From sequence record MK799832.1: DNA of 64,000 nt. One strand, 5' to 3'. The notes under the pieces were generated by a model. The model saw only the letters and a program-made list of their open reading frames with translations, was not told the origin of the DNA and ran no database searches. The translations under genes were made by a program, and so were the position numbers. Below, piece after piece: positions 25,277 to 30,538 of the stretch (positions are counted from its first letter, which is position 1; every line of letters begins with the position of its first letter).

Positions 25277-27319
25277 TTAGTAGGATGCTCTGCTAACGAT
25301 TGCGGTACCAAGTGGTTGTCGGGGAGTTGTGGTCAGAAGTGCCTGTTCTTGTTCAGGGGTTTCGACAGTAGTAATTGGTGTACCTCTTACTAATGCGTTT
25401 GATCCATAACTTGATGAAACAATGTAGTTTGTTCCTGATACATCATTTCCAGAGGAAATGTTGTCAGCAATAACATCGACTGTTGTATTATTTACATCCA
25501 ATTGTAGATAGAGATCTTGGAGACCAATCACATCATTAGAGTATGGAGTTGCCGATACCTCTACCAATGGTGTATTTCTATTTACGATGGTAGAAATGAT
25601 GTTAATTGGGTTGAGTTTGATTTCTCCCTTCTTGTAATCAATAGTACCTACGTTCTGTTTTACAATAATTGGTTCAGTAGGTGAATTAAGTTTGAAGAGG
25701 AATACCGTACCTTTCTCAAGGTCACCTGTGGGTTTATCACCAAGGTAAACCGTACCACTAATACCACTGACAGTGAAACCAGATGATTTGATATTGTAAC
25801 CAACTAGGTTTCCATCGAAGACTGCACTATGACCATGATTCTTCACATGGAAACGATTACCGAAGCATAATTCGTACTCAGCAAACTTATTAGGAGAAGC
25901 AACCATATCTCTTCTCATATTCACATTTGTGATGTTAGAAGTTACAGACTGATGGCTACTATCAATAACCTTTTGGAACTTGGAATATTTGAAACGAGCA
26001 CCAAACTGATTAAGTTCTGATGAATCAGCGTAAGCAGTCAAGTTCTGTAATACTACATTCTGAACGAATGATGCATTAGGTGCAAGGTTTGTATTGTAGT
26101 ATGTCTCACAATCTGCTTCAACATACAGATACTTCAGGTCAATGATCTCTGCTCGAATACCAGCAACTGAGTAACTTTTGATTCTCTGTTGAAGGTTTTG
26201 TTTGATTCCACTTGATAAGAAGACACCATTATATGGTTTGACACTGATGAACACCTTACCAAATTGTGGTGGGCTCAGATCCTCACCACCAAATGCTGAT
26301 ACTGATTCAGCTTCTGGGTAGATCTGTGGAATTAATGCTTCATAATCAGCAGCAGTGACTGCTCTGTTCTGTGATGCGTAAATCTGCGGTGCATACTTCT
26401 TAATCGATTCAACAGATTCAATTGATTTACCACCTGTTGATTGTAAGACCGTTTCAATAATCGATACACCAGAACTAATTCCTGCACCGTTATTATCGTT
26501 TAGGTTACCAATAAATTGAAAGTTTGCAATGTTGTTTCCACTAGCTCCATTACTTGTGATATAACTTGCTTCAATATAATTCTTATCTTCAAGTTTGACA
26601 CCAAAGACACCATCACCAAATAGTAATTCATATCTTTCTTGTGAAATCTCTTGAAGGAAATAAGCTCTGGTTGACTTAGTTACATCAAACAGACTTGTAA
26701 ACAATTCAAACTGTCTTGTTACAGTTGAACTCTGGGTGTCTCTTACAACGACATTCAAGAGATCAGTATCAATACCTGAGTTAGGAAGAATAAACTTCTG
26801 AAGTTTATTACTACCATCTACCGTAAAAGTTTGTTTAATGTATGTTCCTTCGTAGATATTAATATTTCTAAATGATGCAGTACCAGTTGAATCTACTGGA
26901 ACAGTAATATCATTTGGAATTGAGAATATAAAATTTCGACTCTTATTGACACCAGTTGATCTAGATGTCATGACTGCACCAGCCTTAAGTGTGACTGATA
27001 CTGCGGTTGTATTACTTACGTCTACATCAAAAGATACTTGGGCGGTTGATGCTTTTCTTGATCTAGGTACATACCCAATATTCCTCGCGAGAGACACCAC
27101 GTTCTCCCTCAACGTGGCGCTATCGATGAATACCTCATTAGATACCATATTGGCATTATATGAGGTGATATACGTATTATATGCTAACGTATCGATGATT
27201 GTGCTTAGATTCGATCCTTCAAAGTCGTAATCAGTGAAGTTTGAGTTCGAACGAAGATAGTCCTTGATAGACTCTTTGATCTGATCAAAATCTAAGTTGC
27301 TAAAATTAACTAGAGGCAT
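25277..27319 (-). CDS. gp6: Baseplate wedge subunit gp6
   Basis: NFSNLDFDQIKESIKDYLR...DFEGSNLSTIIDTLAYNT and QNRAVTAADYE motifs. Confidence 0.95.
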   Translation of the reverse strand: MPLVNFSNLDFDQIKESIKDYLRSNSNFTDYDFEGSNLSTIIDTLAYNTYITSYNANMVSNEVFIDSATLRENVVSLARNIGYVPRSRKASTAQVSFDVDVSNTTAVSVTLKAGAVMTSRSTGVNKSRNFIFSIPNDITVPVDSTGTASFRNINIYEGTYIKQTFTVDGSNKLQKFILPNSGIDTDLLNVVVRDTQSSTVTRQFELFTSLFDVTKSTRAYFLQEISQERYELLFGDGVFGVKLEDKNYIEASYITSNGASGNNIANFQFIGNLNDNNGAGISSGVSIIETVLQSTGGKSIESVESIKKYAPQIYASQNRAVTAADYEALIPQIYPEAESVSAFGGEDLSPPQFGKVFISVKPYNGVFLSSGIKQNLQQRIKSYSVAGIRAEIIDLKYLYVEADCETYYNTNLAPNASFVQNVVLQNLTAYADSSELNQFGARFKYSKFQKVIDSSHQSVTSNITNVNMRRDMVASPNKFAEYELCFGNRFHVKNHGHSAVFDGNLVGYNIKSSGFTVSGISGTVYLGDKPTGDLEKGTVFLFKLNSPTEPIIVKQNVGTIDYKKGEIKLNPINIISTIVNRNTPLVEVSATPYSNDVIGLQDLYLQLDVNNTTVDVIADNISSGNDVSGTNYIVSSSYGSNALVRGTPITTVETPEQEQALLTTTPRQPLGTAIVSRASY

Positions 27320-27721
27320 TTACCTAGTGGGTTGTAATGCAAATGATAATTGTTGTGGTGCTACGTCAATACCAATGATGTCATACCGAATGACTACATC
27401 GAAGGCATTATTGTCAAAGTTAGGGTTAACTTCAACTTCTCTCAATCGAACTCTTGGTTCAAAGTTATTAATCGTGTTCTCAATCTCAGATCGAATAGAA
27501 CTTGCTGTCAAGAAGTCTAAGTTTTCAAATAATAAGTTGGTGACATTTGATCCAATTGTTGGTTCAAATGGTTTCTCACCAGGAATGGTAAAGACTAAAT
27601 TACGAATTGAACGAGCAATAGCATTCTCGTTTCTCAGGATAATCACATCAGAATTGATCGGATTAACCTGAAAAGTAGCACTTACGTCTTTAAAAGCTTT
27701 ACTTATCCTTTGGACAGGCAC
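27320..27721 (-). CDS. gp25: Baseplate wedge subunit gp25 (GTG start)
   Basis: AIARSIRNLVFTIPGEKPFEPTIGS...IENTINNFEPRVRL; immediately upstream of gp6. Confidence 0.93.
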   Translation of the reverse strand: MPVQRISKAFKDVSATFQVNPINSDVIILRNENAIARSIRNLVFTIPGEKPFEPTIGSNVTNLLFENLDFLTASSIRSEIENTINNFEPRVRLREVEVNPNFDNNAFDVVIRYDIIGIDVAPQQLSFALQPTR

Positions 27722-27747: not shown

Positions 27748-27755
27748 TATTTATA
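27748..27755 (-). promoter_or_regulatory. Late promoter TATAAATA upstream of gp25
   Basis: Exact T4 gp55 consensus about 27 nt upstream of the gp25 start. Confidence 0.8.
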
Positions 27756-27940: not shown

Positions 27941-28567
27941 TTATATATCCTTCACCTCGTACATATAATGATCAGAGGTTTCAATCTTCCTTTTGTTCTC
28001 TACACTATAGACTGTAGTATCAATCTCAAATCCAGGATTCTTTTCAATACGATTAAATGTCCAGGCATTATCATACCAAATGATTCGATTGTTAGGATAG
28101 GCGTAATAGTTACCAGTCTCTACTTTAAACAGGTGTGCACACTTATGTTCAGGTGTTTCTGAATAGTTGAGATCAGGTACACCTTTATTCTCCCAGGACC
28201 AATCTAAGGTGAACATATAATCACCCAATACCTTCTTACCATCAGGACGAATCAATTGTGCTTCAAGACCAGCAAGTCGATGTCGTCTTTGTACATCAAT
28301 ATAAGGACTGAAGCAATCCCAATACATGATCTGCTCTAAGGGTTCTATCTCGGCCTCTGGGTCCCAACAAAATGCATGTAGGGGTCTCCGTGTCCAATTG
28401 ACACCATTCTCCAGAAACGCTTCAAATAGAGGCACACGTTTCTCAATACTTGCCACACTATGAACATCGGCCTTAGTGACCTCTCCATGTCCTTTCTTGT
28501 GGTTATACAGAAACTCATTACGAATGTAACAAGACCAATCAGGTAAACTGTGATTTAAGTAAGCCAA
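27941..28567 (-). CDS. Hypothetical protein, 208 aa (TTG start)
   Basis: Long ORF on the coding strand overlapping the upstream SET gene stop; Trp/Cys/His-rich. Confidence 0.8.
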   Translation of the reverse strand: MAYLNHSLPDWSCYIRNEFLYNHKKGHGEVTKADVHSVASIEKRVPLFEAFLENGVNWTRRPLHAFCWDPEAEIEPLEQIMYWDCFSPYIDVQRRHRLAGLEAQLIRPDGKKVLGDYMFTLDWSWENKGVPDLNYSETPEHKCAHLFKVETGNYYAYPNNRIIWYDNAWTFNRIEKNPGFEIDTTVYSVENKRKIETSDHYMYEVKDI

Positions 28568-28929
28568 TTCCTTTCTCCTGGAAAATAATAATCAGTGAGT
28601 TCTTCGTCCTTAAGTATATCACGAACTGCATACAGTTTACCTGTACTTCGTTCATATGCTACATTCGGTTCATGTGAATGATTGATGTAATACTGTTGAC
28701 CTAACCGTTGTAGATCATCATCAATCCAATAACCATTACCATCATAATAAGTCATCTTCTCTAGATACTCTCTTATTTCAGATGATATCTGCCATTCACA
28801 TATTTGAACACACTTCTTAGGTTCAAAGATAATAGTATCTTTTGGAATATCCACTAAAGAAAAAACACCCACCCCGTCACAGACTTTACTGGGAGCGAGA
28901 TAGGTGTAAACAGTTAGATTATAACTCAA
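28555..28929 (-). CDS. SET-domain protein (lysine methyltransferase fold)
   Basis: GVGVFSLVDIPKDTII, YINHSHEPN and RDILKDEELTDYY match SET motifs; TTG start overlaps the upstream TGA. Confidence 0.8.
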   Translation of the reverse strand: MSYNLTVYTYLAPSKVCDGVGVFSLVDIPKDTIIFEPKKCVQICEWQISSEIREYLEKMTYYDGNGYWIDDDLQRLGQQYYINHSHEPNVAYERSTGKLYAVRDILKDEELTDYYFPGERNWLT

Positions 28930-29072
28930 CGTCCTTGACCACGATAACGCTTCTTCTTACCGTTTCGAGAGGAAGCTGACAACTTAGTGTGCTTACCACT
29001 ACCTTGACGTGATTTCTTTGGAGTTGACTCGATCATTGTTTGACCAGTCAGTGAACGTTTAAACTTTGCCAT
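28926..29072 (-). CDS. Small K/R-rich basic protein, 48 aa
   Basis: Hand-translated MAKFKRSLTGQTMIESTPKKSRQGSGKHTKLSASSRNGKKKRYRGQGR; GGAGG 6 nt upstream of the ATG. Confidence 0.8.
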   Translation of the reverse strand: MAKFKRSLTGQTMIESTPKKSRQGSGKHTKLSASSRNGKKKRYRGQGR

Positions 29073-29080
29073 AATACCTC

Positions 29081-29647
29081 CTAATATGGTTCAAAATAAT
29101 TTAAAACTTCATCAATGTGAAACACATAGCACGGAGCTGTTGTGTATCCATAGTATAACATCTTTTGTATCCTATGGGAACCATCCATTGATCTATATCT
29201 CTTTCCAGTAATCGTAGTAGTACCATCTAATAAGATACCTGGATATGTAATATCTGCTTCAATGACTCTACTACCACCACAACATGGACAATATAATGTA
29301 TCTGAGGTAGCTCCATATTTCTCTTCCTGATACCATTGAATATCAGAAATCGGAACATCCAGTAGTCTATCTGAATTACGCATCCAATTCAATCTTCTTA
29401 ATCGAATCCAATACCCTTCACCTACCTCTGGAATATACCAATTGGTTTCGGACTTGAATCCAGACTTATCATAATGTTGAAAACTATCACCCTCAAAGTA
29501 ATGAGAAAATAATAACTCATCATACCATCCATCATAACCATATAACTTTAATTCATTGTCTCGATAATCATCAATACAATAAATGTTACCAGGTATCAGT
29601 TCTGGATACTGTGAGAAACCATCATACAATACAAGTAATCCTTTCAT
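29081..29647 (-). CDS. Hypothetical protein with ParB/Srx-like C-terminal motif
   Basis: ADITYPGILL...YRSMDGSHRIQKM contains the DGxHR signature, preceded by CPCC. Confidence 0.55.
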   Translation of the reverse strand: MKGLLVLYDGFSQYPELIPGNIYCIDDYRDNELKLYGYDGWYDELLFSHYFEGDSFQHYDKSGFKSETNWYIPEVGEGYWIRLRRLNWMRNSDRLLDVPISDIQWYQEEKYGATSDTLYCPCCGGSRVIEADITYPGILLDGTTTITGKRYRSMDGSHRIQKMLYYGYTTAPCYVFHIDEVLNYFEPY

Positions 29648-29649
29648 AT

Positions 29650-29673
29650 AAAAAAAGGGGGGTCGAAACCCCC
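29650..29673 (-). terminator. Rho-independent terminator
   Basis: Minus strand GGGGGT-TTCG-ACCCCC followed by a T run. Confidence 0.9.
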
Positions 29674-29678
29674 ATACA

Positions 29679-30482
29679 TCAGATCACCCGAGTCTTCTCA
29701 TGACCCACTCGAATCCGTGGATCACACCAGATATCATATCCAGCTTCAATTGCATCAAGACAGAATGAAACGTCTTCACCACACATATCTTGAACTGCAC
29801 CACTTTCAAACACTTGCATCTTAGGAGCAAACCAAGGATACTTCATCTTCTCATTCTCAAAGACACCATTCTGAATCAGAACCCAACCGAATCCAGTGTA
29901 GTCAACAGTAAATGGCTTCTTACGCTTACTGATACCATCAACCATCTCATGGTTCATCACACCACCATTATTCCTGAAGTCATCTTCTTCCAACCAATGC
30001 GCAACAGAGGTTGTCCGCCCGTCCTCAGTCGAATACCAACCTGCAACGATTTCCTTCTCCTCACCTTCAGAGTTTAAAGCTAGGTCGCACAGCTGCCAGA
30101 ACTTCTCAGTGTTAAAAATAATATCAGAGTCAATCCACAACTGATAATCATAATTCAACTTACCATCCCAAGGAATCTGGTCAGGCCCTCTCAACACATT
30201 GGCGCCGAGACACTTACAACGTGCGAAGTTCACCATAGACGAGTAATCCTGACTGATCTGAATACTCATCTGGTTCTGTACAAGATCAAAACATAACTGT
30301 ACAAAATTCTTCATGAATGCATATGAACATCCACGTCCTGGAAGACAAAAAACAATTGCCTTCCCTCTCATCCTTTCTTTGATCGCTTCATAGTCCCACT
30401 CAGGACCTTTATCTTTCTTCTTTGGTTCTGAAGCTTTTACTGTAAAACCTTTAGCCATGAATTTGAAATCACTCCATTTCAA
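29679..30482 (-). CDS. GT-A fold glycosyltransferase-like protein
   Basis: IVFCLPG, WIDSDIIF (DxD), VDYTGFGWVLI, GEDVSFC and IRVGHEK motifs; true start probably MAKGF. Confidence 0.7.
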   Translation of the reverse strand: MKWSDFKFMAKGFTVKASEPKKKDKGPEWDYEAIKERMRGKAIVFCLPGRGCSYAFMKNFVQLCFDLVQNQMSIQISQDYSSMVNFARCKCLGANVLRGPDQIPWDGKLNYDYQLWIDSDIIFNTEKFWQLCDLALNSEGEEKEIVAGWYSTEDGRTTSVAHWLEEDDFRNNGGVMNHEMVDGISKRKKPFTVDYTGFGWVLIQNGVFENEKMKYPWFAPKMQVFESGAVQDMCGEDVSFCLDAIEAGYDIWCDPRIRVGHEKTRVI

Positions 30483-30538
30483 TTTTTATTATACCAAGTA
30501 TGTAGTCCTCTGTCAATCACTGAGGGTATCGGTAAACC

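Follow-up and report, generated by a model that had tools for sequence, protein, structure and literature searches.

Phage S-B05 (GenBank accession MK799832.1) is a member of the family Kyanoviridae with a genome of 208,857 bp and the host Synechococcus sp. MW02. The window analysed here, a stretch of 64,000 nucleotides (nt) from that record, contains a gene for a small SET-domain protein, referred to below as SET-A, which is located between the gene for a basic protein of 48 amino acids (aa) and an orphan gene annotated as 'PurM'. The locus lies between a variable early-gene region and the baseplate module gp25-gp6-gp7, and all of its genes are on the minus strand. The deposited coding sequences QCW22836.1 and QCW22837.1 correspond to the 124-aa and 48-aa open reading frames (ORFs), with identical coordinates, and tblastn matched both ORFs to the S-B05 record at 99–100%. 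The central features, with the evidence for each in brackets, are:

28555–28929, minus strand: SET-A, a predicted 124-aa minimal SET-domain methyltransferase with a TTG start (Pfam PF00856, AlphaFold2, Foldseek, VIA-align, alignment)
28926–29072, minus strand: 48-aa basic protein with an ATG start, a core cyanomyovirus gene (phrog_516, E 3.2e-24)
28926–28929, minus strand: TTGA overlap of the peptide stop TGA with the SET-A start TTG (read from the sequence)
29077–29082, minus strand: AGGAGG Shine-Dalgarno site, 4 nt 5′ of the peptide ATG, overlapping the stop of a 188-aa ORF (read from the sequence)
27941–28567, minus strand: 'PurM-like' orphan protein of 208 aa with a TTG start (phrog_3704, E 2.2e-52)
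28555–28567, minus strand: 13-nt overlap of the SET-A 3′-end with the PurM-like TTG start (junction alignment)
27748–27755, minus strand: T4-type late-promoter motif TATAAATA, 27 nt upstream of gp25 (the sole minus-strand match in the window)
27320–27721, minus strand: baseplate wedge gene gp25 (Pfam GPW_gp25, E 3.5e-15; PHROG baseplate wedge family)

Profile, fold and the conservation of catalytic motifs all speak strongly for SET-A being a genuine SET domain. It matches the Pfam SET profile with 50.5 bits against a cut-off of 22.4 (E 3.2e-13), over profile positions 1–104 of 105 and residues 19–115 of the protein, which corresponds to the SET core only, with no pre-SET or post-SET domains. 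The initial annotation, which was made from the sequence alone, had described a minimal SET domain of 124 aa with a TTG start and the motifs GxG, NHSxxPN and EELTDY. All of these were found in the ORF at 28555–28929, as G19-V-G21, N83-H84-S85-x-x-P88-N89 and E109-E110-L111-T-D-Y-Y115, with the small correction that the invariant, catalytic-type tyrosine is Y115 and not Y114. In an alignment of 51 family members (48–87% identity), residues G19, G21, Y80, Y81, N83, N89, E110, L111 and Y115 are invariant, H84 is conserved in at least 90% of the sequences, and P88 is replaced by glutamate in one sub-clade. When the family profile was compared with PDB chains, residues 8–117 matched the SET domains of MLL4 and MLL3 (E about 1e-5), and Y115 aligned with their catalytic tyrosine (...DY). 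The SET fold that had been read from the motifs was borne out by an AlphaFold2 (AF2) model with a predicted local distance difference test (pLDDT) score of 85.9, for which Foldseek returned 104 PDB chains at E ≤ 1e-3, every listed one being a SET or PR domain. VIA-align gave 169 chains with Z ≥ 8, led by SMYD3 (10.9), chlorovirus vSET (10.7) and MLL1 (10.4). The BFVD matches were SET proteins from giant viruses and uncultured tailed phages.

The Pfam score, the intact ORF in all 33 related loci and a median pairwise ratio of nonsynonymous to synonymous substitution (dN/dS) of 0.22 together indicate that the SET ORF is more than a chance reading frame. Since SET-A is under purifying selection, it presumably does something useful in infected Synechococcus. 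The protein looks catalytically competent and is probably active as a protein-lysine methyltransferase dependent on S-adenosylmethionine (SAM). Cyanophages are rich in auxiliary metabolic genes, and one of the Foldseek matches is BurB, a SET-fold enzyme that acts on a small molecule (9l4v, in complex with S-methylmethionine; E 2.2e-4), so that SET-A could be imagined to methylate a small molecule as an auxiliary metabolic enzyme, or to be a catalytically dead binding module. We regard either as very unlikely: BurB ranks only 28th, and dozens of lysine methyltransferases with histone or non-histone substrates score at least as well; protein lysine methyltransferases also provide the best matches by profile and by structure; and the invariance of the canonical SAM-binding and catalytic residues under purifying selection argues against a dead domain.

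SET-A was found by tblastn in seven phage records of three lineages, namely the S-B05 group, Sf-CH1b (64% identity) and SynMITS9220M01 (50%), and a PHROG profile search assigned it to no PHROG family. In the record of SynMITS9220M01 (L003, MT408532.1, 3870–4372), the deposited annotation lacks the gene of the 44-aa basic protein, calling a 92-aa ORF in another frame instead, and shortens the SET gene to an internal ORF of 64 aa; the full, TTG-started SET protein of 123 aa aligns end to end with that of S-B05. Among 5.8 billion proteins, a word search recovered 168 SET-A clusters at 90% identity, mostly of about 120–127 aa; nearly all of those listed carry PF00856, and nearly all come from marine metagenomes. 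Loci of the S-B05 type occur in sequencing runs of 10 independent studies. In 185,579 species genomes, a pattern scan gave three matches and no evident cyanobacterial donor. The closest cellular relative among these genomes is a 32%-identical Thermoanaerobaculia protein, in which a SET domain and no other domain was found, at the C-terminus of an open frame of ~600 aa with an uncertain start. The other two matches are SET-A fragments in a 'Methanobacteriota archaeon' metagenome-assembled genome (L117, WTHQ01000031.1) and in one of a Flavobacteriaceae bacterium (L118, RFXU01000219.1), on short contigs of 2.4 and 2.9 kb, respectively. The former also has gp25 and a PurM-like gene of the S-B05 type (S-type), and both contigs look like cyanophage DNA that was mis-binned. 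On a gp25 tree of 94 loci, which were sampled by similarity and compared over 133 alignment columns only, the presence of SET-A requires 12 changes, at least eight of them forced by well-supported branches; it follows that gain, loss or exchange of the SET gene has happened repeatedly, in most cases with the S-type PurM-like gene included. Judging from this distribution, SET-A is an accessory gene that occurs sporadically in marine T4-like cyanophages.

The basic protein encoded directly upstream contains nine lysines, six arginines, a single glutamate and no aspartate (pI 12.0), and is rich in glycine and serine. Its lysine and arginine counts and all the sequence strings quoted for it in the initial annotation were recovered in the ORF at 28926–29072, and the overlap of its stop with the SET-A start was read as TTGA at 28929–28926. 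The peptide has no match in Pfam or NCBIfam, and the ESM Atlas gave unnamed clusters only. By tblastn, phrog_516 peptides occur in 443 phage records, all of them Synechococcus or Prochlorococcus phages or marine viruses, and their core and C-terminal motifs are strongly conserved across 112 loci. On this evidence the gene of the 48-aa protein belongs to the Kyanoviridae core and is shared by almost all marine T4-like cyanophages. A caveat of the initial annotation, that the SET gene might be an independent insertion beside a generally conserved peptide, thus agrees with the counts of 443 and seven records and with an overlap architecture that SET-less loci share.

The linkage counts that follow refer to the 33 SET-A loci sampled first, which represent about 11 sequence lineages. 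The peptide gene is directly upstream of SET-A in 29 of them. In locus L024, a 149-aa ORF lies between the two genes; in its closest relative, L023, 150 nt upstream of the SET gene are covered and hold no peptide gene, and the same intervening ORF is probably present there. The two remaining contigs, L016 (45.6 kb) and L022 (37.8 kb), carry SET-A with no peptide gene anywhere on the fragment. Such a neighbourhood could be taken to mean that the two genes form a dedicated pair, in which the SET enzyme methylates one or more lysines of the adjacent basic protein, while translational coupling supplies the enzyme beside an abundant substrate and methylation tunes DNA or RNA binding or packaging. 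The TTGA overlap, the immediate adjacency in most loci and in divergent clades, the pairing of an acidic enzyme with a very basic, glycine/serine-rich peptide, and the invariant peptide lysines K19 and K41 are consistent with this idea. So is the general knowledge that SET enzymes of Chlamydia, Methanosarcina and chloroviruses target basic chromatin proteins. Most of the comparative evidence points the other way, and we consider such a pair unlikely. The peptide occurs in 443 phage records and the SET gene in seven. Among more than 449 peptide loci in IMG/VR, the best 80, with peptides 69–83% identical to that of S-B05, were inspected; none has SET-A, and one has a different SET gene. Peptides beside a SET gene are 52–94% identical to the S-B05 peptide and have no distinguishing residue. 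Because the closest peptides lack SET-A while SET-associated ones reach down to 52%, the two proteins do not co-vary. K19 and K41 are conserved in all SET-bearing loci and equally so without a SET gene, and K20 or K29 is replaced in several SET-associated peptides. Two SET lineages have no adjacent peptide gene, and a second phage SET family (SET-B, described below) is encoded far from the peptide gene in phage P-SSM7 and also occurs in a Pelagibacter phage, in whose group tblastn found no peptide gene. The survey of co-occurrence suggested in the initial annotation (0 of 80 nearest peptide loci with SET-A; two SET contigs without the peptide) hence spoke against the peptide, which was named there as a possible substrate beside a host protein, as the dedicated substrate, and the comparative data from the 33 SET-A loci and 80 peptide loci give no support for such a pair.

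The overlap itself appears to be a property of the location. The peptide/SET overlap of 4 nt is present in 10 of the 30 SET loci that have the peptide, and the other adjacent pairs are separated by gaps of 4–9 nt. Two SET-less phages, S-CAM1 and S-RSM4, show overlaps of 4 nt and 1 nt, respectively, between the peptide stop and the gene that follows. Since the SET-less peptide gene likewise abuts or overlaps whatever follows it, the chaining of stop and start is a feature of the slot and not of the SET gene, so that the neighbourhood gives no reason to favour the peptide as the substrate. About one in three of the sampled loci has gp25 ~72 nt downstream of the peptide gene. The late-promoter motif ATAAATA overlaps the peptide stop codon (TAA) in loci L041, L046, L049, L064, L067 and many other SET-less loci, so that the core peptide gene ends exactly where the baseplate late unit begins. 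The motif TATAAATA at 27755–27748 in S-B05 is the same late-promoter motif and marks the downstream edge of the variable slot. Depending on the phage, the slot contains a PurM-like gene (about half), denV, small ORFs, an 87-aa membrane ORF, SET-A, SET-B or a gene resembling ATE_C. With such contents, the interval between the core basic-protein gene and the gp25 late promoter is, by all appearances, recombination-prone, and being neighbours within it is not good evidence for the peptide as the SET substrate.

If anything, the SET gene seems more closely tied to the PurM-like orphan than to the peptide gene. The PurM-like gene is directly downstream of SET-A in all 33 loci, with an identical 13-nt overlap, which the initial annotation did not mention, in 32 of them and also in the divergent locus L123, and divergent SET-A clades recovered from assemblies keep the order peptide-SET-PurM-like-gp25. 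An S-type PurM-like protein is encoded in 32 of the 33 loci and is 86–98% identical to that of S-B05, whereas gp25 in the same loci is 39–98% identical; only one of the 80 inspected SET-less peptide loci has an S-type protein. Together with the scatter of the SET/S-type pair over the gp25 tree, these counts could be explained by a two-gene module in which SET-A and the S-type protein cooperate, the latter as substrate or as a specificity or adaptor subunit of the enzyme, and their genes pass jointly from one cyanophage backbone to another. This we consider quite unlikely. An S-type gene stands without SET in locus L062 and in DSL-LC02 (72% identity), where it has its own ATG, ribosome-binding site and upstream hairpin, and a search of the junction in L062 found no SET remnant upstream of it. 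SynMITS9220M01 and L126 pair the SET gene with a distant PurM-like type (about 32% identity), and in contigs L127 and L128 from Logan (646–1128) a 160-aa ATE_C-like gene (Pfam E 2.2e-6, above cut-off) separates the SET and PurM-like genes. PurM-like genes are also widespread in SET-less phages: the family comprises 112 phage records, including pelagiphages and Flavobacterium phages, and the S-type and the common type share about 30% identity. Finally, the PurM-like protein has no assignable fold or function. An AF2 model from a 34-sequence alignment was unusable (pLDDT 37.5), a PDB profile search returned nothing at E ≤ 10, and the ESM Atlas was blank.

The name 'PurM' for this phrog_3704 protein is itself unsupported. 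No AIRS/PurM match was obtained in Pfam, NCBIfam or PDB profiles, and the PHROG label of the family is 'ferredoxin'. As a separate observation, the ATE_C-like gene in L127 and L128 is of the arginine-tRNA-protein transferase C-terminal type, which places two putative protein-modifying enzymes side by side in these contigs.

Taken together, we assign a probability of roughly 60% to the reading that SET-A is a functional minimal SET lysine methyltransferase, carried as a sporadic accessory gene in a variable slot, whose neighbourhood does not identify its substrate. In the sequence of the S-B05 locus, no promoter is evident for the peptide and SET unit. Because the SET-A start overlaps the peptide stop and the peptide cistron has a strong AGGAGG site, SET-A would probably be made in small amounts by re-initiation from that cistron. 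Most likely, it would then mono- or oligo-methylate lysines in a basic, flexible segment of some protein of the infected cell; a basic substrate is plausible because SET-A is acidic (pI 4.6; family range 4.3–5.2, family length 121–126 aa). A host protein is our leading candidate for the target, at a little less than even odds. Another phage protein, possibly the PurM-like neighbour, would be a less probable target, and the neighbouring basic peptide, a candidate on chemical grounds, a slightly weaker one again; that the substrate is not a protein at all seems very improbable. In systems derived from cyanobacteria, non-histone partners are known for the SET-fold proteins Rubisco LSMT and PAP7, the latter being attached to the plastid RNA polymerase (PMC11561172), which makes a host target for SET-A plausible.

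Several points weigh against the reading preferred here. Both the activity of SET-A and its target are things that we infer, and the sampling of loci was biased by pattern and similarity. The two peptide-less SET contigs, L016 and L022, are fragments about 20% complete. The SET gene adjoins the peptide gene in 29 of 33 loci, or about 9 of 11 lineages, and additionally in the divergent clades L123, L126 and L127, and this adjacency might exceed what a random insert at a hot spot would show. Basic disordered tails are a typical class of SET substrates, a description that matches the peptide well, and the charges of the two proteins are complementary. A 'writer plus tail' system, in which SET-A would methylate the conserved lysines of the 48-aa protein, or else the host nucleoid or transcription machinery, is thus worth stating, even if we hold it to be rather unlikely. 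If true, it would give SET-bearing phages a tunable, lineage-specific regulation by lysine methylation during infection, and no functional system of protein-lysine methylation would have been described in a bacteriophage before it.

The genes and signals flanking this part of the locus on either side are listed below:

25277–27319, minus strand: gp6, the next gene after gp25 (Pfam Gp6-like domains; PHROG baseplate wedge family)
29081–29647, minus strand: 188-aa ORF upstream of the peptide gene (phrog_35149, E 1.3e-14; no Pfam match)
29658–29673, minus strand: GC-rich hairpin and T-run resembling an intrinsic terminator, abutting the start of the 188-aa ORF (terminator scan)
29679–30482, minus strand: glycosyltransferase-like gene (phrog_1574)
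30516–30488, minus strand: perfect sigma-70-type promoter, TTGACA-17-TATAAT, with an extended −10 TG

The 188-aa ORF was found in the S-B05 record only, among all loci compared for synteny. It contains a CPCCGG motif and a DGSHR motif, the latter presumably recalling ParB/Srx-type domains. Further upstream, the promoter at 30516–30488 and the terminator at 29673–29658 bracket the glycosyltransferase-like gene, which looks like a self-contained early transcription unit.

Much work has been done on the SET lysine methyltransferases of eukaryotes and giant viruses and of a few bacterial pathogens and archaea. No study of SET domains in cyanophages or other tailed phages was found in the full-text literature searched, and the SET-A gene is not mentioned in the Sf-CH1b and jumbo-phage papers. 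SET-A nevertheless belongs to a known kind of enzyme, since GenBank already labels the Sf-CH1b homologue automatically as 'SET domain-containing protein-lysine N-methyltransferase'. The 168 metagenomic clusters and the runs from 10 studies mark the family as environmentally common, and knowing its target would reveal whether lysine methylation serves phages in taking over the host or in maturing their virions. The definition of the slot is useful for reading the plasticity of cyanophage genomes, and serves as a warning against enzyme-substrate pairs deduced from overlap-coupled neighbours.

SET-A is not the only SET family in these phages. SET-B (phrog_28741) is a 98-aa protein (Pfam SET, E 6.9e-11) present in P-SSM7, P-RSM6 and Pelagibacter phage Kolga. 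It shares 34% identity with SET-A over 65 residues and has a weak match to the NCBIfam AnkI/LegAS4 family. In P-SSM7 its gene is located about 110 kb from the peptide gene. In an IMG/VR locus (L109, 2969–3265), it lies within the slot between the peptide gene and gp25, after an 87-aa hydrophobic ORF. SET-B differs from SET-A in being sited elsewhere in P-SSM7 and in having no tie to the peptide or the PurM-like gene.

Among solved structures, the best sequence and profile matches of SET-A are MLL3 and MLL4 (KMT2C and KMT2D), with which the catalytic tyrosine and the NHS..PN motif align. MLL3 and MLL4 require WRAD partners and a post-SET zinc cluster, whereas SET-A ends nine residues past its catalytic tyrosine, with a conserved E-R-D/N-W tail. 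Chlorovirus vSET (PBCV-1 A612L; 3kma) resembles SET-A as a viral minimal SET domain of ~120 residues, with no pre-SET and no cysteine-rich post-SET region. The two share the GxG, NH and catalytic-tyrosine motifs, and vSET is the third-ranked Foldseek match, with a VIA-align Z of 10.7 and a root-mean-square deviation of 2.1 over 70 residues. A specific kinship was not found: SET-A is only 20–27% identical to vSET and no closer to it than to MLL or SMYD SET domains, vSET ties with SMYD3 and MLL1 in Z (10.4–10.9), and it is absent from the PDB matches obtained with sequence and profile searches. The two also differ in their hosts and targets. The target of vSET is histone H3K27 of a eukaryotic host, whereas the SET-A family is specific to marine cyanomyoviruses and the Synechococcus host has no histones. 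Known prokaryotic SET enzymes with basic nucleoid proteins or host histones as substrates include Go1-SET of Methanosarcina, which acts on MC1-alpha, cpnSET of Chlamydia, which acts on Hc1 and Hc2, and LegAS4/RomA of Legionella. No specific sequence kinship of SET-A to these enzymes was shown, the nearest cellular relative in the species genomes being the Thermoanaerobaculia protein. Of the control genomes, Methanosarcina alone gave a SET match, the control check being uninformative for Synechococcus. What the prokaryotic enzymes have in common with SET-A as read here, in a comparison made from general knowledge, is that they are small, non-eukaryotic SET enzymes, and their substrates are lysine-rich basic proteins.

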